NCBI GenBank assembly: GCA_965644315.1
Contig: CBFFRQ010000018.1
Location: 1,116,001 to 1,180,000, forward strand
Origin: Caecitellus pseudoparvulus
Lineage: Eukaryota > Protista > Bigyra: Bicosoecida
Direction of reading: 5' to 3'
DNA: 64,000 nucleotides
Every line of letters begins with the position of its first letter. The stretch's first letter is position 1. The position numbers and the translations under genes are program-made. This document shows positions 16,772 through 32,725 of this stretch, one piece after another. A model generated the notes under the pieces. That model had not been told where the DNA came from. It made no database searches and worked only from the letters and a program-made list of their open reading frames with translations.

Positions 16772-17041
16772 CTCTGTACAGGCTCGCCTCGGGACGGCAA
16801 CTTCTAAGTTGCTGCGTCGACTGGGCAGAGCAGGGCTCCACTCTCTCATGTGCGCACAAATCCAATGCACTCTTCACTGAGGATCAGACAAAAGTGCAAG
16901 ACCGGTGCTGGGTTATGCTAGATTCCTTCCCCCACTGCCTGTGGGATTCTGGGAACCAGTGGTGAGAGTGTGTCAGGAACGTGGAGGGAGCCGTACACGC
17001 CGAAGGATTCCGGGAGCCCAGCACATCCAGGTTGGGTCCCC

Positions 17042-20000
17042 ATGGCGGGGATCGGCATTCAGGCCAGGTTTTCCTTGCTTGCTTTCGTCCTAGTCTTGCT
17101 ATGCTGTTCCTGCCCCGTTCCAGGAGCTGCAAACCGCGGGCTTAGGTCCAAGGCTGGCAGGGTCATGCTGCGACATGCACCGCCAGACGGCCGTGTGTGG
17201 ACTGCCATCACACCCCAAAGCACCAATGCGGCAAACTTTGAGGATCTGGAGGTGCTCCGGTTTATTTGCTACTTGAATTGGCCCAGAAACAATCCCCGTG
17301 ACGACTGGACCGAGGGATTCGGCAGGGCCAAGCGCAGTGCAGCTGCTCTGGCTTCACCAGATTCACAAGGGCAGCCTGCGGATCAGGAGGCCAATGGTGA
17401 GGGTGAAACCAGCGCCCACTTGGCGGCATGGATGGACAAAGTCCAATGTGGTGAGCTTGAGTGGGAAGTCACTGCCTTCGATTGCGGAACCCAGGCAGGT
17501 CACATGCCAACACGAGTGCTGGCCCTCGACAGGCCTGCATTCCTTGCACATTGTGCAAATCCGGACCAACTGCGCTTTGGAACACCACAAAGGTCCGTAG
17601 TCTTTCCCAGTAGTACTGGTGGTCCCTTGTCACAGCTATACAGCGACTTCCTCCAGCTGCCGAGGCACGAGCACACCCAGTTGCAGCAAGTAGCCAAGTT
17701 GCACATCCTACACTCCAGAGCCAGCATGCAAAAGTGGCTGAGCCTGCACGTGGATTTGAGAATGGGGGATGTCTACTGGAAGGACGGATTGTTCCCGCTT
17801 GCAAAGTCTCTTTCTGAGCAATGCTCCCATCTCGCTGATGACCCTCGGCTGAGATCTCCAAAGCTCACTGACGTGGTTGCCTTGCATCCGCCTGAACTCA
17901 GCGCGTACGATGCCGTCCGCGTGGTATTGGCACACCAAGCATCACCGTACGAATCTGCTGGTGACCACAAAGGTGGTGGTTTTGATCACAAAAGAAACAG
18001 CAGAATCGGCATTGCTTGTGCAGCCAACCAATGCCAGGCAGCACATACCGACACCCAGCTCCACGCAGCCGTGTGTATTCACGAGCGAAACGCAGATACA
18101 ATGTCACTTTCCGATCGCCGTCACCTACAGGCAACTCCAGAAGCAACGGCGACACCATCCAGTACTCAGAGCCCAACACCCTCTACCAGCGTGTCGCCGT
18201 CGGCATCGGGCACCAGCAGCGTGTCGCCGTCGGCATCGGGCACCAGCAGCGTGTCGCCGTCGGCATCGGGCACCAGCAGCGTGTCGCCGTCGGCATCGGG
18301 CACCAGCAGCGTGTCGCCGTCGGCATCGGGCACCAGCAGCGTGTCGCCGTCGGCATCGGGCACCAGCAGCGTGTCGCCGTCGGCATCGGGCACCAGCAGC
18401 GTGTCGCCGTCGGCATCAGGCACCAGCAGCGTGTCGCCGTCGGCATCGGGCACCAGCAGCGTGTCGGCATCGGGCACCAGCAGCGTGTCGCCGTCGGCAT
18501 CGGGCACCAGCAGCGTGTCGCCGTCGGCATCGGGCACCAGCAGCGTGTCGCCGTCGGCATCGGGCACCAGCAGCGTGTCGCCGTCGGCATCGGGCACCAG
18601 CAGCGTGTCGCCGTCGGCATCGGGCAGCAGCAGCGTGTCGCCGTCGGCATCAGGCACCAGCAGCGTGTCGCCGTCGGCATCGGGCAGCAGCAGCGTGTCG
18701 CCGTCGGCATCGGGCACCAGCAGCGTGTCGCCGTCGGCATCGGGCACCAGCAGCGTGTCGCCGTCGGCATCGGGCACCAGCAGCGTGTCGCCGTCGGCAT
18801 CGGGCACCAGCAGCGTGTCGCCGTCGGCATCGGGCACCAGCAGCGTGTCGCCGTCGGCATCGGGCACCAGCAGCGTGTCGCCGTCGGCATCAGGCACCAG
18901 CAGCGTGTCGCCGTCGGCATCGGGCACCAGCAGCGTGTCGCCGTCGGCATCGGGCACCAGCAGCGTGTCGCCATCGGCATCGGGCACCAGCAGCGTGTCG
19001 CCGTCGGCATCGGGCACCAGCAGCGTGTCGCCGTCGGCATCGGGCACCAGCAGCGTGTCGCCATCGGCATCGGGCACCAGCAGCGTGTCGCCGTCGGCAT
19101 CAGGCACCAGCAGCGTGTCGCCGTCGGCATCGGGCACCAGCAGCGTGTCGCCGTCGGCATCGGGCACCAGCAGCGTGTCGCCGTCGGCATCGGGCACCAG
19201 CAGCGTGTCGCCGTCGGCATCAGGCACCAGCAGCGTGTCGCCGTCGGCATCGGGCACCAGCAGCGTGTCGCCGTCGGCATCGGGCACCAGCAGCGTGTCG
19301 CCGTCGGCATCGGGCACCAGCAGCGTGTCGCCGTCGGCATCGGGCACCAGCAGCGTGTCGCCGTCGGCATCGGGCACCAGCAGCGTGTCGCCGTCGGCAT
19401 CGGGCACCAGCAGCGTGTCGCCGTCGGCATCGGGCACCAGCAGCGTGTCGCCGTCGGCATCGGGCACCAGCAGCGTGTCGCCGTCGGCATCGGGCACCAG
19501 CAGCGTGTCGCCGTCGGCATCGGGCACCAGCAGCGTGTCGGCATCGGGCACCAGCAGCGTGTCGCCGTCGGCATCGGGCACCAGCAGCGTGTCGCCGTCG
19601 GCATCGGGCACCAGCAGCGTGTCGCCGTCGGCATCGGGCAGCAGCAGCGTGTCGCCGTCGGCATCGGGCACCAGCAGCGTGTCGCCGTCGGCATCGGGCA
19701 CCAGCAGCGTGTCGCCGTCGGCATCGGGCACCAGCAGCGTGTCGCCGTCGGCATCGGGCACCAGCAGCGTGTCGCCGTCGGCATCGGGCACCAGCAGCGT
19801 GTCGCCGTCGGCATCGGGCACCAGCAGCGTGTCGCCGTCGGCATCGGGCAGCAGCAGCGTGTCGCCGTCGGCATCAGGCACCAGCAGCGTGTCGCCGTCG
19901 GCATCGGGCACCAGCAGCGTGTCGCCGTCGGCATCGGGCACCAGCAGCGTGTCGCCGTCGGCATCGGGCACCAGCAGCGTGTCGCCGTCGGCATCGGGCA

Positions 20001-23000
20001 CCAGCAGCGTGTCGCCGTCGGCATCGGGCACCAGCAGCGTGTCGCCATCGGCATCGGGCACCAGCAGCGTGTCGCCGTCGGCATCAGGCACCAGCAGCGT
20101 GTCGCCGTCGGCATCGGGCACCAGCAGCGTGTCGCCGTCGGCATCGGGCACCAGCAGCGTGTCGCCGTCGGCATCGGGCACCAGCAGCGTGTCGCCGTCG
20201 GCATCGGGCACCAGCAGCGTGTCGCCGTCGGCCTCGGGCACCAGCAGCGTGTCGCCGTCGGCATCAGGCACCAGCAGCGTGTCGCCATCGGCATCGGGCA
20301 GCAGCAGCGTGTCGCCGTCGGCATCAGGCACCAGCAGCGTGTCGCCGTCGGCATCGGGCACCAGCAGCGTGTCGCCGTCGGCATCGGGCACCAGCAGCGT
20401 GTCGCCGTCGGCATCGGGCAGCAGCAGCGTGTCGCCGTCGGCATCGGGCAGCAGCAGCGTGTCGCCGTCGGCATCGGGCACCAGCAGCGTGTCGCCGTCG
20501 GCATTGGGCACCAGCAGCGTGTCGCCGTCGGCCTCGGGCACTGTGTCGCCATCGGCCTCGGGCACTGTGTCGCCATCGGCCTCGGGCACTGTGTCGCCGT
20601 CGGCCTCGGGCACTGTGTCGCCGTCGGCCTCGGGCACTGTGTCGCCGTCGGCCTCGGCCAGTGTGTCGCCGTCGGCCTCGGGCACTGTGTCGCCGTCGGC
20701 CTCGGGCACTGTGTCGCCGTCGGCCTCGGGCACTGTGACTCCGTCGGCCTCGGGCACTGTGTCGCCGTCGGCCTCGGGCACTGTGTCGCCATCGGCCTCG
20801 GGCACTGTGTCGCCGTCGGCCTCGGGCACTGTGTCGCCATCGGCCTCGGGCACTGTGTCGCCATCGGCCTCGGGCACTGTGTCGCCGTCGGCCTCGGGCA
20901 CTGTGTCGCCGTCGGCCTCGGGCACTGTGTCGCCAGCGACCTCGGGCACTGTGTCGCCATCGGCCTCGGGCACTGTGTCGCCGTCGGCCTCGGGCACTGT
21001 GTCGCCATCGGCCTCGGGCACTGTGTCGCCGTCGGCCTCGGGCACTGTGTCGCCGTCGGCCTCGGGCACTGTGTCGCCATCGGCCTCGGGCACTGTGTCG
21101 CCGTCGGCCTCGGGCACTGTGACTCCGTCGGCCTCGGGCACTGTGTCGCCGTCGGCCTCGGGCACTGTGTCGCCATCGGCCTCGGGCACTGTGTCGCCGT
21201 CGGCCTCGGGCACTGTGTCGCCATCGGCCTCGGGCACTGTGTCGCCATCGGCCTCGGGCACTGTGTCGCCATCGGCCTCGGGCACTGTGTCGCCATCGGC
21301 CTCGGGCACTGTGTCGCCGTCGGCCTCGGGCACTGTGTCGCCATCGGCCTCGGGCACTGTGTCGCCATCGGCCTCGGGCACTGTGTCGCCGTCGGCCTCG
21401 GGCACTGTGTCGCCATCGGCCTCGGGCACTGTGACTCCGTCGGCCTCGGGCACTGTGTCGCCATCGGCCTCGGGCACTGTGTCGCCATCGGCCTCGGGCA
21501 CTGTGTCGCCATCGGCCTCGGGCACTGTGTCGCCGTCGGCCTCGGGCACTGTGTCGCCGTCGGCCTCGGGCACTGTGTCGCCATCGGCCTCGGGCACTGT
21601 GTCGCCATCGGCCTCGGGCACTGTGTCGCCGTCGGCCTCGGGCACTGTGTCGCCATCGGCCTCGGGCACTGTGTCGCCATCGGCCTCGGGCACTGTGTCG
21701 CCGTCGGCCTCGGGCACTGTGTCGCCATCGGCCTCGGGCACTGTGTCGCCGTCGGCCTCGGGCACTGTGTCGCCATCGGCCTCGGGCACTGTGTCGCCGT
21801 CGGCCTCGGGCACTGTGTCGCCATCGGCCTCGGGCACTGTGTCGCCGTCGGCCTCAGGCACTGTGTCGCCGTCGGCCTCGGGCACTGTGTCGCCAGCGGC
21901 CTCGGGCACTGTGTCGCCATCGGCCTCGGGCACTGTGTCGCCGTCGGCCTCGGGCACTGTGTCGCCATCGGCCTCGGGCACTGTGTCGCCATCGGCCTCG
22001 GGCACTGTGTCGCCGTCGGCCTCGGGCACTGTGTCGCCGTCGGCCTCGGGCACTGTGTCGCCATCGGCCTCGGGCACTGTGTCGCCAGCGGCCTCGGGCA
22101 CTGTGTCGCCATCGGCCTCGGGCACTGTGACTCCGTCGGCCTCGGGCACTGTGACTCCGTCGGCCTCGGGCACTGTGTCGCCGTCGGCCTCGGGCACTGT
22201 GTCGCCGTCGGCCTCGGGCACTGTGTCGCCATCGGCCTCGGGCACTGTGTCGCCATCGGCCTCGGGCACTGTGTCGCCATCGGCCTCGGGCACTGTGTCG
22301 CCGTCGGCCTCGGGCACTGTGTCGCCATCGGCCTCGGGCACTGTGACTCCGTCGGCCTCGGGCACTGTGTCGCCGTCGGCCTCGGGCACTGTGTCGCCAT
22401 CGGCCTCGGGCACTGTGTCGCCATCGGCCTCGGGCACTGTGTCGCCATCGGCCTCGGGCACTGTGTCGCCATCGGCCTCGGGCACTGTGTCGCCATCGGC
22501 CTCGGGCACTGTGTCGCCGTCGGCCTCGGGCACTGTGTCGCCGTCGGCCTCGGGCACTGTGTCGCCGTCGGCCTCGGGCACTGTGTCGCCGTCGGCCTCG
22601 GGCACTGTGTCGCCGTCGGCCTCGGGCACTGTGTCGCCATCGGCCTCGGGCACTGTGTCGCCATCGGCCTCGGGCACTGTGTCGCCGTCGGCCTCGGGCA
22701 CTGTGTCGCCATCGGCCTCGGGCACTGTGTCGCCAGCGGCCTCGGTCACTGTGTCGCCGTCGGCCTCGGGCACTGTGTCGCCATCGGCCTCGGGCACTGT
22801 GTCGCCATCGGCCTCGGGCACTGTGTCGCCATCGGCCTCGGGCACTGTGTCGCCATCGGCCTCGGGCACTGTGACTCCGTCGGCCTCGGGCACTGTGTCG
22901 CCGTCGGCCTCGGGCACTGTGTCGCCATCGGCCTCGGGCACTGTGTCGCCGTCGGCCTCGGGCACTGTGTCGCCGTCGGCCTCGGGCACTGTGTCGCCAT

Positions 23001-26000
23001 CGGCCTCGGGCACTGTGTCGCCATCGGCCTCGGGCACTGTGTCGCCATCGGCCTCGGGCACTGTGACTCCGTCGACCTCGGGCACTGTGTCGCCAGCGGC
23101 CTCGGGCACTGTGTCGCCATCGGCCTCGGGCACTGTGTCGCCATCGGCCTCGGGCACTGTGTCGCCGTCGGCCTCGGGCACTGTGTCGCCGTCGGCCTCG
23201 GGCACTGTGTCGCCATCGGCCTCGGGCACTGTGTCGCCATCGGCCTCGGGCACTGTGTCGCCATCGGCCTCGGGCACTGTGTCGCCATCGGCCTCGGGCA
23301 CTGTGTCGCCATCGGCCTCGGGCACTGTGTCGCCATCGGCCTCGGGCACTGTGTCGCCGTCGGCCTCGGGCACTGTGTCGCCGTCGGCCTCGGGCACTGT
23401 GTCGCCGTCGGCCTCGGGCACTGTGTCGCCATCGGCCTCGGGCACTGTGTCGCCATCGGCCTCGGGCACTGTGTCGCCATCGGCCTCGGGCACTGTGTCG
23501 CCGTCGGCCTCGGGCACTGTGTCGCCATCGGCCTCGGGCACTGTGTCGCCGTCGGCCTCGGGCACTGTGTCGCCATCGGCCTCGGGCACTGTGTCGCCAT
23601 CGGCCTCGGGCACTGTGTCGCCGTCGGCCTCGGGCACTGTGTCGCCATCGGCCTCGGGCACTGTGTCGCCATCGGCCTCGGGCACTGTGTCGCCGTCGGC
23701 CTCGGGCACTGTGTCGCCATCGGCCTCGGGCACTGTGTCGCCATCGGCCTCGGGCACTGTGTCGCCGTCGGCCTCGGGCACTGTGTCGCCATCGGCCTCG
23801 GGCACTGTGTCGCCGTCGGCCTCGGGCACTGTGTCGCCATCGGCCTCGGGCACTGTGTCGCCATCGGCCTCGGGCACTGTGACTCCGTCGGCCTCGGGCA
23901 CTGTGCCGCCGTCGGCCTCGGGCACTGTGTCGCCGTCGGCCTCGGGCACTGTGTCGCCGTCGGCCTCGGGCACTGTGTCGCCATCGGCCTCGGGCACTGT
24001 GTCGCCGTCGGCCTCGGGCACTGTGTCGCCATCGGCCTCGGGCACTGTGTCGCCATCGGCCTCGGGCACTGTGTCGCCGTCGGCCTCGGGCACTGTGTCG
24101 CCATCGGCCTCGGGCACTGTGTCGCCGTCGGCCTCGGGCACTGTGTCGCCGTCGGCCTCGGGCACTGTGTCGCCATCGGCCTCGGGCACTGTGTCGCCGT
24201 CGGCCTCGGGCACTGTGTCGCCGTCGGCCTCGGGCACTGTGTCGCCATCGGCCTCGGGCACTGTGTCGCCATCGGCCTCGGGCACTGTGTCGCCATCGGC
24301 CTCGGGCACTGTGTCGCCATCGGCCTCGGGCACTGTGTCGCCATCGGCCTCGGGCACTGTGTCGCCATCGGCCTCGGGCACTGTGTCGCCATCGGCCTCG
24401 GGCACGTCGTCGGCCTCGGGCACTGTGTCGCCGTCGGCCTCGGGCACTGTGTCGCCGTCGGCCTCGGGCACTGTGTCGCCATCGGCCTCGGGCACTGTGT
24501 CGCCATCGGCCTCGGGCACTGTGTCGCCGTCGGCCTCGGGCACTGTGTCGCCGTCGGCCTCGGGCACTGTGTCGCCATCGGCCTCGGGCACTGTGTCGCC
24601 GTCGGCCTCGGGCACTGTGTCGCCGTCGGCCTCGGGCACTGTGTCGCCATCGGCCTCGGGCACTGTGTCGCCGTCGGCCTCGGGCACTGTGTCGCCGTCG
24701 GCCTCGGGCACTGTGTCGCCATCGGCCTCGGGCACTGTGTCGCCGTCGGCCTCGGGCACTGTGTCGCCATCGGCCTCGGGCACTGTGACTCCGTCGGCCT
24801 CGGGCACTGTGTCGCCGTCGGCCTCGGGCACTGTGTCGCCATCGGCCTCGGGCACTGTGTCGCCGTCGGCCTCGGGCACTGTGTCGCCGTCGGCCTCGGG
24901 CACTGTGTCGCCGTCGGCCTCGGGCACTGTGTCGCCATCGGCCTCGGGCACTGTGTCGCCATCGGCCTCGGGCACTGTGTCGCCGTCGGCCTCGGGCACT
25001 GTGTCGCCATCGGCCTCGGGCACTGTGTCGCCGTCGGCCTCGGGCACTGTGTCGCCGTCGGCCTCGGGCACTGTGTCGCCATCGGCCTCGGGCACTGTGT
25101 CGCCATCGGCCTCGGGCACTGTGTCGCCATCGGCCTCGGGCACTGTGTCGCCATCGGCCTCGGGCACTGTGTCGCCATCGGCCTCGGGCACTGTGTCGCC
25201 ATCGGCCTCGGGCACTGTGTCGCCGTCGGCCTCGGGCACTGTGTCGCCATCGGCCTCGGGCACAGTGTCGCCGTCGGCCTCGGGCACTGTGTCGCCATCG
25301 GCCTCGGGCACTGTGACTCCGTCGGCCTCGGGCACTGTGTCGCCGTCGGCCTCGGGCACTGTGTCGCCATCGGCCTCGGGCACTGTGTCGCCGTCGGCCT
25401 CGGGCACTGTGTCGCCGTCGGCCTCGGGCACTGTGTCGCCGTCGGCCTCGGGCACTGTGTCGCCATCGGCCTCGGGCACTGTGTCGCCGTCGGCCTCGGG
25501 CACTGTGTCGCCGTCGGCCTCGGGCACTGTGTCGCCATCGGCCTCGGGCACTGTGTCGCCGTCGGCCTCGGGCACTGTGTCGCCATCGGCCTCGGGCACT
25601 GTGTCGCCATCGGCCTCGGGCACTGTGTCGCCGTCGGCCTCGGGCACTGTGTCGCCGTCGGCCTCGGGCACTGTGTCGCCGTCGGCCTCGGGCACTGTGA
25701 CTCCGTCGGCCTCGGGCACTGTGTCGCCATCGGCCTCGGGCACTGTGTCGCCGTCGGCCTCGGGCACTGTGTCGCCATCGGCCTCGGGCACTGTGTCGCC
25801 ATCGGCCTCGGGCACTGTGTCGCCATCGGCCTCGGGCACTGTGTCGCCATCGGCCTCGGGCACTGTGTCGCCATCGGCCTCGGGCACTGTGTCGCCATCG
25901 GCCTCGGGCACTGTGTCGCCATCGGCCTCGGGCACTGTGTCGCCATCGGCCTCGGGCACTGTGTCGCCATCGGCCTCGGGCACTGTGTCGCCATCGGCCT

Positions 26001-29000
26001 CGGGCACTGTGTCGCCATCGGCCTCGGGCACTGTGTCGCCGTCGGCCTCGGGCACTGTGTCGCCATCGGCCTCGGGCACTGTGTCGCCATCGGCCTCGGG
26101 CACTGTGTCGCCGTCGGCCTCGGGCACTGTGTCGCCATCGGCCTCGGGCACTGTGTCGCCATCGGCCTCGGGCACTGTGTCGCCGTCGGCCTCGGGCACT
26201 GTGTCGCCATCGGCCTCGGGCACTGTGTCGCCATCGGCCTCGGGCACTGTGTCGCCGTCGGCCTCGGGCACTGTGTCGCCATCGGCCTCGGGCACTGTGT
26301 CGCCGTCGGCCTCGGGCACTGTGTCGCCATCGGCCTCGGGCACTGTGTCGCCATCGGCCTCGGGCACTGTGTCGCCATCGGCCTCGGGCACTGTGTCGCC
26401 ATCGGCCTCGGGCACTGTGTCGCCGTCGGCCTCGGGCACTGTCGCCGTCGGCCTGGCACGTCGCCGTCGGCCTCGGGCACTGTGTCGCCGTCGGCCTCGG
26501 GCACTGTGTCGCCATCGGCCTCGGGCACTGTGTCGCCATCGGCCTCGGGCACTGTGTCGCCATCGGCCTCGGGCACTGTGTCGCCGTCGGCCTCGGGCAC
26601 TGTGTCGCCGTCGGCCTCGGGCACTGTGTCGCCATCGGCCTCGGGCACTGTGTCGCCGTCGGCCTCGGGCACTGTGTCGCCATCGGCCTCGGGCACTGTG
26701 TCGCCGTCGGCCTCGGGCACTGTGTCGCCATCGGCCTCGGGCACTGTGTCGCCGTCGGCCTCGGGCACTGTGTCGCCGTCGGCCTCGGGCACTGTGACTC
26801 CGTCGGTGTCGGGCACTGTGTCGCCGTCGGCCTCGGGCACTGTGTCGCCGTCGGCCTCGGGCACTGTGTCGCCGTCGGCCTCGGGCACTGTGTCGCCATC
26901 GGCCTCGGGCACTGTGTCGCCATCGGCCTCGGGCACTGTGTCGCCATCGGCCTCGGGCACTGTGTCGCCGTCGGCCTCGGGCACTGTGTCGCCATCGGCC
27001 TCGGGCACTGTGTCGCCGTCGGCCTCGGGCACTGTGTCGCCAGCGGCCTCGGGCACTGTGTCGCCATCGGCCTCGGGCACTGTGTCGCCATCGGCCTCGG
27101 GCACTGTGTCGCCATCGGCCTCGGGCACTGTGTCGCCATCGGCCTCGGGCACTGTGTCGCCATCGGCCTCGGGCACTGTGACTCCGTCGGCCTCGGGCAC
27201 TGTGTCGCCATCGGCCTCGGGCACTGTGTCGCCATCGGCCTCGGGCACTGTGTCGCCATCGGCCTCGGGCACTGTGTCGCCATCGGCCTCGGGCACTGTG
27301 TCGCCATCGGCCTCGGGCACTGTGTCGCCATCGGCCTCGGGCAGTGTGTCGCCGTCGGCCTCGGGCACTGTGTCGCCGTCGGCCTCGGGCACTGTGTCGC
27401 CGTCGGCCTCGGGCACTGTGTCGCCGTCGGCCTCGGGCACTGTGTCGCCATCGGCCTCGGGCACTGTGTCGCCATCGGCCTCGGGCACTGTGTCGCCATC
27501 GGCCTCGGGCACTGTGTCGCCGTCGGCCTCGGGCACTGTGTCGCCATCGGCCTCGGGCACTGTGTCGCCATCGGCCTCGGGCACTGTGTCGCCATCGGCC
27601 TCGGGCACTGTGTCGCCATCGGCCTCGGGCACTGTGTCGCCGTCGGCCTCGGGCACTGTGTCGCCATCGGCCTCGGGCACTGTGTCGCCGTCGGCCTCGG
27701 GCACTGTGTCGCCATCGGCCTCGGGCACTGTGTCGCCATCGGCCTCGGGCACTGTGTCGCCATCGGCCTCGGGCACTGTGTCGCCATCGGCCTCGGGCAC
27801 TGTGTCGCCATCGGCCTCGGGCACTGTGTCGCCATCGGCCTCGGGCACTGTGTCGCCATCGGCCTCGGGCACTGTGTCGCCGTCGGCCTCGGGCACTGTG
27901 TCGCCATCGGCCTCGGGCACTGTGTCGCCATCGGCCTCGGGCACTGTGTCGCCGTCGGCCTCGGGCACTGTGTCGCCGTCGGCCTCGGGCACTGTGTCGC
28001 CATCGGCCTCGGGCACTGTGTCGCCGTCGGCCTCGGGCACTGTGTCGCCGTCGGCCTCGGGCACTGTGTCGCCATCGGCCTCGGGCACTGTGTCGCCGTC
28101 GGCCTCGGGCACTGTGTCGCCGTCGGCCTCGGGCACTGTGTCGCCATCGGCCTCGGGCACTGTGTCGCCATCGGCCTCGGGCACTGTGTCGCCGTCGGCC
28201 TCGGGCACTGTGTCGCCATCGGCCTCGGGCACTGTGTCGCCATCGGCCTCGGGCACTGTGTCGCCGTCGGCCTCGGGCACTGTGTCGCCGTCGGCCTCGG
28301 GCACTGTGTCGCCATCGGCCTCGGGCACTGTGTCGCCATCGGCCTCGGGCACTGTGTCGCCGTCGGCCTCGGGCACTGTGTCGCCATCGGCCTCGGGCAC
28401 TGTGTCGCCATCGGCCTCGGGCACTGTGTCGCCGTCGGCCTCGGGCACTGTGTCGCCATCGGCCTCGGGCACTGTGTCGCCATCGGCCTCGGGCACTGTG
28501 TCGCCATCGGCCTCGGGCACTGTGTCGCCATCGGCCTCGGGCACTGTGTCGCCGTCGGCCTCGGGCACTGTGTCGCCGTCGGCCTCGGGCACTGTGTCGC
28601 CGTCGGCCTCGGGCACTGTGTCGCCGTCGGCCTCGGGCACTGTGTCGCCATCGGCCTCGGGCACTGTGTCGCCGTCGGCCTCGGGCACTGTGTCTTCGTC
28701 TGTGTTTGCTAGTGCAAGTGTGTCTTCTTCAGTGTCTAGCAGCGCAACTGCTTCTGTGTCCGGTTCGTGCACGAGTTCTGTGTCACCTTCCGTTTCTGGT
28801 AGCATCATTTCATCTGCTTCTGTGTCGTCAAGTGTTACTCGGACGCCTTCTGGGTCTCCTTCGCTGTCTTCGAGTAGCAGTGTGTCTCCGTCAGTCAGCG
28901 CCTCGGGAAGTGAGACAAGAACAGTGCTTCCGACACTCTTTTCTCCGCTTGTATCGGTGTCGCCTTCCATGAGCGCCTCTTCTACGGCTAGCTTTACGGC

Positions 29001-31695
29001 TTTGATATCTCCTTCATCGACTTCTTCAGTGTCTGGGTCCTGGTCTCCGTCCGCTTCAAGGTCATCGACGGCAACTGGCTCTCCTTCCCCAAGCTCTTCA
29101 CCTTCTTTTTCGCCCTCAGCATCGCCGAGCATTCTTGCGTCCGCGTCACCTACTTCGGGGGTTTGTTCAGCTGCTCGATGCAGTGCTCGCCAAGACTGCT
29201 CAGTGGTTTCACCCAGGGATGATGCCCGCACAGCGTCTTCCTCTCAACTCGACGCCGCATGGGGTAATCTCACCTCTCTCATTGTCCAAAGAGCATCGGA
29301 GGTTGTTGCTCTGGGGACATGCCAGTGCAAGGAAGGCTTGTTCGGGCCGGGCTGCATGTCAAACACGACTTTTTTTTCTCCGACTTGTTTTGACGGCCAA
29401 CTTTCAGGCAATGACACAGACGTGGACTGCGGTGATCCAGCCTGTGGGATTTTGTGCGACGCTGGACAGCTGTGCTCGTCATCTGACAATTGCAGGGGTG
29501 GTTTGGCGTGTGCATTCGGAGTTTGTGGCCACAGAAACGTCTCTGACTCCCCTCCGCCACTTATTGCGAGTGTGACGATGCTCTTTCCTGGGCTTGCAGT
29601 GGGTATGACGGCTACAATGGAGTTCGGCAGCCGTGTACTCTCCCTCGCCAAGGAAGCTGTACCGCAAGCAGGTGGACCTGTAGTCGACCAAACGATTCAC
29701 ATTGCGCGTGTTGAGGCAGCACTGGACACTCCCTCTCGCCGCCTTGGCCTGCAGCCTGTGTTTCTCCAGTCACATGATGGACTTGCTGTTCTGACACGAT
29801 CAAGGCACGCTTCGAGCAGTTCGTTCCGAGCGAGGCTCCTATCCTCAGACGAAGCAACGTTCAACATTTTTGGCACACGAGTAACTTTCGCCATTCCCCT
29901 TGCTGTGACAGGGCAAAGCTGGTCTGAAGCTGTGCAGGTGGGATACTCCCTGTTGAGTGTACTTGCCAATGCTTCCACCGAAGCGACGCTCCTGATGGAG
30001 TTGCACCAGGGCATTGACGGCTTTCCTGCCTTTTTCGTTGCAGCAGACGAGGATTCAGGCATGGTAGTTGACACAAGCGGGCTTGAGAACACAAACCTCT
30101 TTGCTTTGATCAATGAGGGCACTGTCGTGCCGCAAGTGTCGCCAAGCCCACCTTCTGGAAGGGCAGGTGGGCCTGGGTCCGACTCCAACAGGCTGCTGGG
30201 CGTGTATCTGGGTGTGCCGTTGGCAGTTCTTGTCTTGTGCTTGGCGGGTGTGTTTGCCGTGTGGCGGTGGAGGCGGGAAGAAAGGCGCCGCCCTCGACGT
30301 GACGTCGGCGAACGCATTTACCCAGTGCGCCCCCGAGCACTGTCTCGAGCAGACCGCGTTCAGCGTCAAGGCAGGCCTGAGCCTGGCACAATCCAGCCAG
30401 AGCAAGCCAACTCTGGTGACCCTGTCGCTGAGCGAGCTCGGCGCGTCATCGACAGGGTTACGACCCGAAAGAAGTCTCGGTGGTCCATTTTCCAACCACC
30501 CTCTGGAGAGCAAGCCCCATTGCCTCCTAGTGCGCCCTCCGCCGGAATTTCCAGCGGTGGTCAGCCAGGCGCTCTGGGACCACATCGCCCTCGCAGCCAT
30601 GCGGGGTCTTCTCGCCGCACCCTGGCTCCAGGGGCTGCAGCCGCCATAGCAAGGGTCATGGCATCAGCCGAAGGGGCAGGTGGTGCAGGAGGTGAAACGA
30701 AGCCTCCGTCTATTGCATCCATCTTGACTTCTGGGAAAGCGATGGAGCTGCCCGAAGAGGATGAACATGAATCTGGAGCGTTCAGATCACGCGCACTGTC
30801 TCGGGCAGAGCGCACGCGGTTCGCCAGTGCAGGCAAGCCGCCCATGCCGCCTCTCGCGGAGGAAGGCCGCAGTGGAAGTGGACGTGGTGGCCGCCTGCAC
30901 GTCGGACCTTCTCAGCCAGTCGACGCGACAGCCTACGCCAAGTGGATTGCCAGCCAACATGAGCAGCCGAGGGAGGGAGGACTTGCATCGAGGGGGGCGG
31001 CGGGTGGACGCACCCCGCATCAGCAGCGGTCTGATGCACCAGAGCCAACGGATCCCACGAGTCGCTCCAGGGCACGGGCAAACTCCCTGGTGCGAGCTCA
31101 GGCTGCGCTTTCGAGCAGCACCAGGGTTCGGAACCCTTTGCTTGCGCATCGAAGTGCACAAGCAGGCCGCAGAGCAGCGGAGCAGCCTAGCGAGTCTGAC
31201 TCTGCCTCTTCCACCGTGCGTGTTCCAGCAGCTCGCAGGCACCTGGCTCCCTTGGCAGGTGCATCGGCCCGCCAAGCCGCCCGCATGCAGGGCGCTCAGC
31301 CCAGCACCAGGACCTTGGTAGACAACCCACTGCACAATGCTGGCGCTGCACGGACGCTGCCAAGCGCAGGGCAATCTGCAGGAGGGGACGTCCCCCAGGC
31401 ACGAGGCAGAGCCGTAGCTCACAGCACAAGCCGCAGCTCACAGTCGAGCGACGTGGAGAACCCTTTCCTTCAGGCAATGGCCAGGCAGGCAGGCCGTGGC
31501 CAGCAGTCTACACGGCGCCCGTCAGCCCTGCTTCCGAGACCCAGTGCTCCACAGCGGCCCGCAATGCCGAGCCAACTCGCAGCGGCCATGAGCATGCCCA
31601 CAGCAGGCAGCGCGGGGCACGACACCCACTTTGAGTCTCCCATGCTGGCCCCCAGTCGAGCGCGCTCAAGCAGGGGATCAAACAGGAAGAAGTAG
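17042..31695 (+). CDS. Giant (~4,900 aa) mucin / serine-rich-repeat type I membrane protein, with an apparent frameshift near 26441-26460
   Basis: Signal peptide (FSLLAFVLVLLCCSC), ~360 aa N-terminal domain, ~10.5 kb of SPSASG repeats, EGF-like and Cys-rich modules, TM helix LLGVYLGVPLAVLVLCLAGVFAVWRW followed by RREERRR, long cytoplasmic tail. ORF 16970-26797 supplies the N-half and ORF 18016-31695 supplies the C-half. Confidence 0.85.
18185..20539 (+). repeat. Coding tandem array A: 30-bp unit encoding TSSVSPSASG, about 78 copies
   Basis: Consensus accagcagcgtgtcgccgtcggcatcgggc. Two units lack 6 bp (near 18461 and 19540). Confidence 0.97.
20540..28692 (+). repeat. Coding tandem array B: 24-bp unit encoding TVSPSASG, about 340 copies
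   Basis: Consensus actgtgtcgcc(g/a)tcggcctcgggc. Variation is dominated by the synonymous Pro codon CCG/CCA. Confidence 0.97.
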
Positions 31696-31760
31696 CGCTG
31701 TGGTGCTTTGGCGACCAGGCACTACGCTAGGACAGTTCATTGTGTGCAACGGGCAGCGGA

Positions 31761-32030
31761 TCAGGTGCCGCGGCGCTCCATGGCGAGACGCTCCATGCGC
31801 TTGTTCTGAATGCTCCAGTACACGGCCAACACGACTGATAGCAGCAAGAAGGCAGCACCGGATATCCTCCCGAAGAGCTTCATCTCTGGAGTGGCGATTT
31901 GGGGCTCGGGGTCTTCAGATGTGCCATTGCCCGTGCTGTTTGCAGCGAGCACCCTCGGCACTCGGGTTGCCTCGATGAGAGATAGCCACCCAACCAACAG
32001 CGTCAACAGAATATGTGCTTTGAAATCCAT
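31761..32030 (-). CDS. Small (89 aa) single-pass membrane protein of unknown function
   Basis: From ATG 32030: signal peptide MDFKAHILLTLLVGWLSLIEA, N-glycosylation sequons NST and NGT, TM helix ISGAAFLLLSVVLAVYWSI, basic tail. Confidence 0.6.
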   Translation of the reverse strand: MDFKAHILLTLLVGWLSLIEATRVPRVLAANSTGNGTSEDPEPQIATPEMKLFGRISGAAFLLLSVVLAVYWSIQNKRMERLAMERRGT

Positions 32031-32725
32031 GGCGTGCACAGCTCTACCCCTTGGCGCTCTGTGCAAGTGGAAACGAGCAGGCTCGTGCAGTCGCCGCGAC
32101 AGCAAGGGACACCAACAAAGCCGTGCCCTGTCAGGCCCTGGAGTCGAGGTCGAGGTACAACCAACACAGTTCTGCTTGGTACAGAACCACTGCATGTTGC
32201 CATGCAGGCACCTCAAGGTAAAAAGCCGCCGCCCGGAGGCCTCACACGGCACTTGTAGCAGAGGGGTTGCGTTGGGCACCACACTCACACCTTGCGAAGC
32301 ACACAATGGAACGCTGGGCCAGGCAGACGGGACGATCAGCACCCGAGAGATGATGCTTAACCCTATCCTCTTATGGCGCTCAAGGGCGCAGCAGGCTTGC
32401 TTGAGAGCAGCACAGCAGCTTTCTGGGCTCAGCAAGCGTCCTTGTGAGTGGAGTACGTCGCCGCGTCAGGCACTGGGACCACGGTGGTGCTGGTCATGAT
32501 AATACTTCCAGAACATGTGCATGGGAAGTGCATGGATTGAGATTTGCGCGCACTCCATGGTATGTGTGCGCTGAAAAACAGGAAGCAAAGCGTGAGAATG
32601 AGGGTGCTGTGCGGGGACAAGAGCAACTCCTCCGAAAAAAAAACACACAGCAGAGTTCACAAAGCGTAGTGACTCAGTTCTCTCTCCCCTAGCTCTCCCT
32701 CCTGTCAAAAAGCAGCACATTTGCA

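Follow-up and report, generated by a model that had tools for sequence, protein, structure and literature searches.

The window analysed here is a 64,000-nucleotide stretch of the Caecitellus pseudoparvulus genome (GCA_965644315.1, contig CBFFRQ010000018.1), designated G000:C18:1116001-1180000 in our searches of the 30.6-Mb assembly of 215 contigs. Our analysis supports positions 17042-31695 of this window as protein-coding: the gene specifies a very large surface protein of type I topology, whose Ser/Thr-x stalk joins an orphan head to a Cys-rich base anchored in the membrane. The gene is built from the following parts, given in window coordinates.

17042-17134, + strand: start codon and signal-peptide-like hydrophobic segment of 31 aa (Kyte-Doolittle maximum of 2.26, residues 1-31)
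17135-18184, + strand: orphan head of ~350 aa with 8 Cys and an isoelectric point (pI) of 6.5, in frame with the Ser/Thr reading of the array
18185-20536, + strand: 30-nt array encoding T-S-S-V-S-P-S-A-S-G, with 76 full units and two 24-nt units
20537-28692, + strand: 24-nt array encoding T-V-S-P-S-A-S-G, with ~335 units
26435 (20 nt) and 26455 (21 nt), ending at 26475, + strand: two aberrant units of the 24-nt array, together 41 nt instead of 48, at which the frame breaks
28693-29160, + strand: degenerate Ser-rich flank of 156 aa with S/T-x alternation and one phase slip
29161-29526, + strand: Cys module, comprising an EGF-like C-x-C...G-x-x-C element with an insertion of ~35 aa, then a Cys knot
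29527-30183, + strand: juxtamembrane domain of ~220 aa with an R-R-L-G motif
30184-30270, + strand: single transmembrane (TM) helix (Kyte-Doolittle maximum of 2.49), then an Arg cluster on the cytoplasmic side
30271-31695, + strand: cytoplasmic tail of 474 aa (pI 11.8), rich in Ala, Arg, Ser and Pro, with three V-x-N-P-(L/F) motifs and a stop codon at 31693

Tandem Repeats Finder places the 30-nt array at 18187-20541 (78.9 copies, 97% match) and the 24-nt array at 20519-28694 (341 copies, 96% match), while cutting the arrays at a fixed anchor, from which our unit counts are taken, yields 76 units of 30 nt, 335 of 24 nt and five odd units. The stalk encoded by these arrays is ~3,500 residues long (10,509 nt), and its units contain 50-60% Ser plus Thr and 10-12.5% Pro. 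An initial annotation of this DNA had described Ser or Thr at every second residue of both arrays for about 3,500 residues, and this description is borne out by the 2,766 residues that can be followed in a single unbroken register, where alternate positions are Ser or Thr in 99.4% of cases and the other positions in 6%. The exceptions at the Ser/Thr positions are a few single units with Ala, Pro or Leu. The same annotation had reported three in-frame deletions of two residues, and we locate these as short units at 18449 (24 nt), 19523 (24 nt) and 24401 (18 nt), each lacking 6 nt. Such deletions keep the Ser/Thr register because the array unit consists of 6-nt sub-repeats (TCG-NNN), and selection is not required to explain them. 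The 24-nt unit is nearly confined to the locus, with 299 matches genome-wide and 297 in the window. No higher-order repeat was found in the pattern of CCA and CCG (Pro) codons along the arrays, in which the Pro variants mix without period. In sequencing runs of other strains, the summed depth of collapsed repeat contigs at the array end (28660-28694), relative to that of the flanking single-copy contigs, is ~47x in run X10, ~350x in X11, ~700x in X5 and ~1,400x in X1. The spread is a crude sign of large differences in array length among strains and no measure of copy number.

The Ser codon in the array is always TCG. None of the six frames is interrupted across the array, as would be seen if this were non-coding satellite DNA and its open frames a by-product of a stop-free unit. 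Several features of the locus nevertheless make a satellite extremely improbable. The open reading frame (ORF) of the head shares its frame with the Ser/Thr reading of the array before the break, as does the ORF of the tail with the Ser/Thr reading after it, a coincidence expected in 1 of 9 cases. Moreover, the tail is selected and paralogues share the architecture, as described below, and the degenerate flank keeps its Ser residues with diversified codons. In the flank, 37 of 39 alternate positions are in register as far as a phase slip near 28927, after which 33 of 39 are in the other register, so that the register is largely kept here, as the initial annotation had proposed. All six Ser codons are used in the flank (TCT 24, TCG 13, TCA 12, AGC 9, AGT 7 and TCC 7). 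This combination of alternate Ser/Thr residues with every Ser codon suggests a constraint on the alternation at the level of the protein, and it is these flank codons alone that suggest it.

The gene had been taken to be one reading frame from 17042 to 31695. This is not the case, given that the span of 14,654 nt is no multiple of 3, that 7 nt are missing at 26435-26475 and that a stop codon follows at 26795. One frame (position mod 3 = 2) carries the head together with the first 8.2 kb of array and ends at that stop; the last 2.2 kb of array and everything 3' of it belong to another (position mod 3 = 1), open from 17986 to 31693. It is across 26435-26475 that the Ser/Thr frame changes from the one to the other, and the missing 7 nt are most readily explained by small deletions at three places (2, 2 and 3 nt). 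The pieces before and after the break were translated and searched separately and were never joined.

Evidence on the part of the gene behind the break comes from other strains. A marine-metagenome scaffold in ENA (L011, protein P0001) begins at the array end and aligns without gaps to positions 28639-32138 at 97.6% identity; the neighbouring genes on this scaffold (DCP2, PPR and EDR2) give it a eukaryotic context. In the tail frame, comparison with the scaffold yields a ratio of non-synonymous to synonymous differences per site (pN/pS) of 0.33, from 42 synonymous and 38 non-synonymous differences, and the two wrong frames give 1.42 and 1.16. When the frame is divided into segments, pN/pS is 0.42 for the flank, 0.32 for the Cys module, 0.36 for the juxtamembrane domain and 0.27 for the TM helix and tail. 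These ratios indicate that the tail frame is under purifying selection and that the part after the break is selected coding sequence. In addition, contigs from four runs in four studies (three of organisms and one of a marine metagenome) cover 28660-32300 at ~97-100% identity, and the sole indel across the four runs lies at 31701, 6 nt behind the stop codon, with none within the coding sequence. The divergence from the metagenome scaffold (28693-32138 against L011:55-3500) drops steadily away from the array: the flank differs at 6.0% of positions, the Cys module at 3.3%, the juxtamembrane domain at 2.0%, the TM helix with the tail at 1.8%, and the sequence 3' of the stop codon at 0.2% (1/443). 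In run X1, two contigs cover 30084-30318 (235 nt) with 0 and 15 differences, respectively, and represent two alleles of the tail.

The loss of 7 nt at 26435-26475 is probably an assembly or polishing error. We hold an artefact to be somewhat likelier because the 5.2 kb after the break are open, selected and free of indels in other strains. Three separate small deletions within 41 nt also fit an artefact, and clustered small deletions in GC-rich repeats are common in long-read assemblies. If the genome were that of Cafeteria burkhardae, a further pointer to an artefact would be that PacBio/Illumina assemblies of this species are reported to carry ORF-splitting indels unconfirmed by Sanger sequencing (PMC8547959). 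The exact 34-nt break junction has no match in JGI metagenome contigs, a result that is uninformative. A less probable but quite conceivable explanation is that the break is real, reflecting a recent lesion that has left a null or truncated allele, or a young pseudogene, in this haplotype. The assembly as given does carry the deletion, the odd unit at 24401 shows similar small clustered deletions, so that such events may be genuine, and one of the two tail alleles in run X1 could be broken and the other intact. A truncated allele would specify a signal peptide, the head, ~3,130 residues of stalk and ~120 out-of-frame residues before the stop at 26795, and its product would be secreted without an anchor. 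The downstream 5.2 kb, however, are open and selected (at the pN/pS given above) and lack indels elsewhere; any lesion must therefore be very recent. It is also conceivable, although very improbable, that the cell gets round the break, through recoding or through an intron across it whose length is 2 mod 3, or that the break itself acts as a repeat-mediated on/off switch. Selection on the tail despite the break would fit a bypass, as would the GT donors throughout the units and the AG that occurs in rare units, but the canonical 24-nt unit contains no AG and there is no precedent for such a bypass in this organism.

The N-terminal part of the gene starts at 17042 with the first ATG behind an in-frame stop at 16919, and the head ORF comprises ~405 codons that are open in DNA of 56% GC. 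The head itself is an orphan at every level of search: it has no match among Pfam, NCBIfam and PDB sequences, no paralogue in its own genome, no relatives in JGI metagenome contigs and, in an exhaustive HMMER search of 1.84 billion representative proteins, 0 hits at E <= 0.001. An N-glycosylation sequon is absent from the head. Nor is there any sign of a leishmanolysin (M8) identity, as the head has no Pfam match to this family and no H-E-x-x-H motif. Structural look-alikes of the head in the ESM Atlas were at noise level (0.76-0.80), and the metalloprotease clusters among them were set aside for a head without HExxH; no look-alikes of the base were found there.

At the C-terminal end, the Cys knot of the base bears a D-G...T-D-V-D-C-G motif. 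Searches of Pfam and NCBIfam with the Cys module and tail gave nothing meaningful, and a PDB sequence search with a family profile of the base gave nothing. Only the N-terminus, the TM helix and one marginal stretch rise above the hydropathy threshold, and, as judged by hydropathy only, the protein has the type I topology of a signal peptide, one TM helix and a cytoplasmic tail. The order predicted by the initial annotation (signal peptide, head, stalk, Cys module, TM helix and a tail of ~470 aa) is therefore what we find, the tail being 474 aa long. The tail had also been called a signalling tail, a term that we cannot uphold: Pfam detects no signalling domain in it, and it has only recurrent V-x-N-P-hydrophobic motifs, which lie at 31132-31143, 31324-31335 and 31459-31470. 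The sequence of these N-P motifs suggests that they are a candidate adaptor-binding short linear motif. A 33-nt segment of the tail (31258-31290) is common to another locus, in that contigs from three runs match only here and have unrelated sequence on both sides.

The base of the protein is not unique in the genome. The Cys module and juxtamembrane domain match loci on contigs C32 and C68 (E values of 1.7e-9 and 3.3e-9, 28-31% identity), and a profile search adds a fourth member of the family, C68b (C68:440614-441006, E value of 2.4e-8). The three paralogues are as follows.

G000:C32:352086-357593 (L008): paralogue C32, Peptidase_M8 and CAP head, 27-unit stalk
G000:C68, ~121000-130000 (L007/L009): paralogue C68a, Peptidase_M8 and CAP head, 112-unit stalk
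C68:439747-442443: paralogue C68b, M8-like head, (G-T-P-A-V-T-P-A)n stalk, cassette, TM helix and short tail

In C32 and C68a, the heads score 1.1e-51 for Peptidase_M8 (leishmanolysin) and 1.5e-15 for CAP, the stalk unit is SGSVTAAVTPSS (S-G-S-V-T-A-A-V-T-P-S-S), and a cassette, TM helix and tail follow. An alignment of four rows, which does not contain C68b, reveals invariant Cys columns, D-G, T-D-x-D-C-G and R-R-L-G. The last of these motifs, at ~29737-29748 in the present gene, is dibasic and invariant across aligned paralogues that are only ~30% identical; its sequence could make it a candidate site of proteolytic maturation or shedding. The paralogue tails do not align with one another. 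All four family tails, however, have two or three V-x-N-P-(L/V/F/M/A) motifs, and N followed by P is more frequent in the tails than composition predicts (p values of 0.028, 0.022 and 0.0038). All members thus share a homologous Cys module, juxtamembrane domain and TM helix, a tail with V-x-N-P-hydrophobic motifs, and a Ser/Thr/Pro stalk between head and cassette. In contrast, the paralogues have Peptidase_M8 heads with or without CAP where the present gene has an orphan head, and their stalks, made of unrelated and non-alternating units, are 3 to 10 times shorter. C32 and C68a are nearly identical, differing mainly in the number of 36-nt repeats (27 versus 112), which shows that stalk length changes rapidly within one genome.

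Outside the genome, a word-based search with the cassette of this gene found only a 97%-identical metagenome fragment, and the same kind of search with the Cys module of C68b found nothing. The databases seemingly lack the organism's own proteome, so that this absence carries less weight than it might seem to. On these sequence comparisons, the gene belongs to a lineage-specific family in which different heads are mounted on fast-evolving Ser/Thr/Pro stalks above one cassette. The earlier proposal that the stalk projects a head fits this family, as its paralogues carry extracellular domains on Ser/Thr/Pro stalks above the same base.

Taken as intact, the gene product would be a giant type I membrane mucin-like surface protein of ~4,880 aa from a marine protist with GC-rich DNA, a reading to which we assign a probability of roughly 0.7. 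The signal peptide would take the protein into the secretory pathway, and its Cys-containing head of ~350 aa would precede ~3,500 residues of (S/T-x)n specified by two homogenised arrays. An anchor would be provided by the cassette, which comprises the interrupted EGF-like element, the Cys knot, the juxtamembrane domain and the TM helix, and the tail would be basic and disordered with short V-x-N-P-hydrophobic motifs. Densely O-glycosylated and extended, the stalk would serve as a spacer or brush and keep the head at a distance of hundreds of nanometres above the membrane. At the length figure for mucins of 0.25 nm per residue, a stalk of 3,500 residues would reach ~0.9 micrometre, in agreement with the arithmetic of the initial annotation. 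We propose a glycosylated spacer or brush because tandem repeats rich in Ser, Thr and Pro usually bear O-glycans and adopt an extended form in eukaryotic secreted proteins (PMC6817596).

Several observations, however, weigh against this reading. No ORF in this assembly covers the whole gene, and no reads across the array confirm or remove the break. The sequencing runs are Logan contigs, none of them proven to be RNA, and transcription of the gene is unproven; the label 'RNA?' on one run is a guess, and the contigs of this run total about one genome's worth. AlphaFold2 models are unusable for both ends of the protein, the predicted local distance difference test (pLDDT) score being 30.5 for the head (single-sequence input) and 37.5 for the base (4-row alignment). 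Glycosylation of the stalk is inferred from composition only. As for the enzymes that might carry it out, the genome contains 2 PMT-family loci, 5 prolyl-4-hydroxylase (P4H)-like loci and 7 Glyco_transf_7C loci. The last of these were considered as polypeptide GalNAc-transferases (ppGalNAc-transferases) and rejected, all of the loci scanned (3 of 7) being GT7- or CHGN-like. Similarly, the single GT60 hit in the genome was discarded as evidence for mucin-type O-GlcNAc because of its fusion to a prolyl hydroxylase. The hit lies in a 927-aa open frame at G000:C81:254814-256295 (- strand), which combines a 2OG-Fe(II) prolyl-hydroxylase-type PF13640 domain (1.7e-19) with PF11397, GT60 'GlcNAc' (1e-46), and in our view the fusion resembles the cytoplasmic Skp1 hydroxylation/glycosylation pair. 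ORFs of the CHGN-like type (chondroitin GalNAc-transferase family), 724-803 aa in length, are found at G000:C18:147500-151800 (L017) and G000:C13:137000-141200 (L018). Judging from the sequence of the stalk, which has one Ser-Gly per unit, decoration of the glycosaminoglycan type may be an alternative to mucin-type glycans.

The strict two-residue period, with V, P, A or G at the other positions, would also be expected of a repeat that forms a regular fibre, beta-type or silk-like, and serves as a structural coat or thread rather than as a glycosylated brush, and the alternation kept in the degenerate flank points the same way. We regard such a fibre as improbable, given that each 8-10 residues contain one Pro and one Gly, and that a protein displayed at the cell surface is the better match for both the type I anchor and the family context. 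A second functional proposal, which we consider possible but doubtful, is that of an adhesin or tether resembling the bacterial serine-rich repeat proteins (SRRPs), in which the head would bind prey, substrate or virus and the tail would signal. The alternating S/T-x composition matches the serine-rich repeat (SRR) regions of SRRPs, heads with enzymatic or binding roles sit on stalks in this family, and the N-P motifs of the tail could couple the protein to endocytic adaptors. As context only, starving Cafeteria up-regulates adhesion-type extracellular proteins (PMC7852580). On the other hand, the head has no recognisable binding fold or relatives, the tail has no signalling domain and the paralogue stalks are not alternating; long mucin domains, moreover, are equally able to act as anti-adhesive or protective coats. 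More speculative still, and unlikely as a whole, is a scheme in which the S/T-x register is selected, as the flank codons suggest, for regular glycan spacing on a micron-long rod. In this scheme the family would be a capture-and-processing platform of a phagotroph, with heads (an orphan binder in the present gene, leishmanolysin/CAP in the paralogues) far out on tunable stalks, uptake through the binding of V-x-N-P-hydrophobic motifs to EH-domain or similar endocytic adaptors, and shedding or maturation at the RRLG site.

Whatever its function, the gene is lineage-restricted and stands out for its size and its strict two-residue register. If the gene is intact and expressed, its mucin-type stalk would rank among the longest on record for a unicellular eukaryote, and it would be the largest of the four members found in its private family. 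To our knowledge, free-living heterotrophic flagellates are major grazers of marine bacteria, and their surface molecules are almost uncharacterised; the members of this family are candidate molecules that may act in prey recognition or attachment, form a protective coat or interact with viruses. At present the gene, an orphan that is frame-broken in the assembly, is a well-defined lead.

With respect to known systems, the initial annotation regarded the protein as convergent on SRRPs. Members of this bacterial group, such as Fap1, GspB, PsrP and SraP, have an alternating Ser-x stalk, the order SRR1-binding region (BR)-SRR2, an accessory Sec (aSec) signal, an LPxTG motif and a SecA2/Y2-Gtf locus. 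The likeness holds for the alternating Ser-x composition, in that both kinds of protein have a very long stalk that holds a non-repeat region off the cell and for which O-glycosylation is expected, but it does not extend to the LPxTG motif, the SRR1-BR-SRR2 order or the extended signal peptide. Instead of LPxTG, the C-terminus here is a TM helix with a basic tail of 474 aa. The N-terminus is an ordinary hydrophobic segment of 31 aa rather than an extended aSec signal, and the head follows it directly with no SRR1. The logic of the SecA2/SecY2-GtfA/B operon, moreover, is inapplicable to a eukaryotic gene. The resemblance to SRRPs is best treated as convergent composition, an analogy only, for which 'SRRP-like system' would be an unfair description; an intact and expressed gene would mean that such stalks arose independently of those in bacteria.

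Among protists, Leishmania proteophosphoglycan (PPG), the Trypanosoma cruzi mucins and Toxoplasma CST1 (PMC6817596, PMC5225312) have Ser/Thr-rich tandem repeats (Ser-rich in PPG) in a heavily glycosylated surface or wall layer, but these are parasite proteins of unrelated sequence that are either secreted or anchored by glycosylphosphatidylinositol. A nearer parallel would be the membrane-tethered or signalling mucin, whose plan comprises a signal peptide, a mucin domain of variable number tandem repeats (VNTR), Cys-rich and juxtamembrane modules, a TM helix and a tail (PMC3431866, PMC3491010). No Pfam match at E <= 1 was obtained for SEA, NIDO/AMOP/vWD or HMH, although a remote SEA-like fold is still possible at the pLDDT of the base. 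The present gene also differs from such mucins in having no sequence homology to them, an N-terminal orphan globular head, a strict two-residue S/T-x register and a lineage-private cassette. Nevertheless, its plan matches that of animal MUC1, MUC4 and MUC16 and of fungal Msb2 and Hkr1 (PMC3431866, PMC3491010, PMC6817596): behind a signal peptide comes a long Ser/Thr/Pro VNTR ectodomain, and modules of the Cys-rich/EGF-like and juxtamembrane kinds adjoin a single TM helix with a cytoplasmic tail. As in mucins, the repeat domain is rich in Pro, Thr and Ser, and the repeat number varies, here between the paralogues with 27 and 112 units. By analogy of plan, the closest known kind of protein would appear to be the eukaryotic membrane-tethered or signalling mucin, to which the present protein belongs by kind only and without homology.

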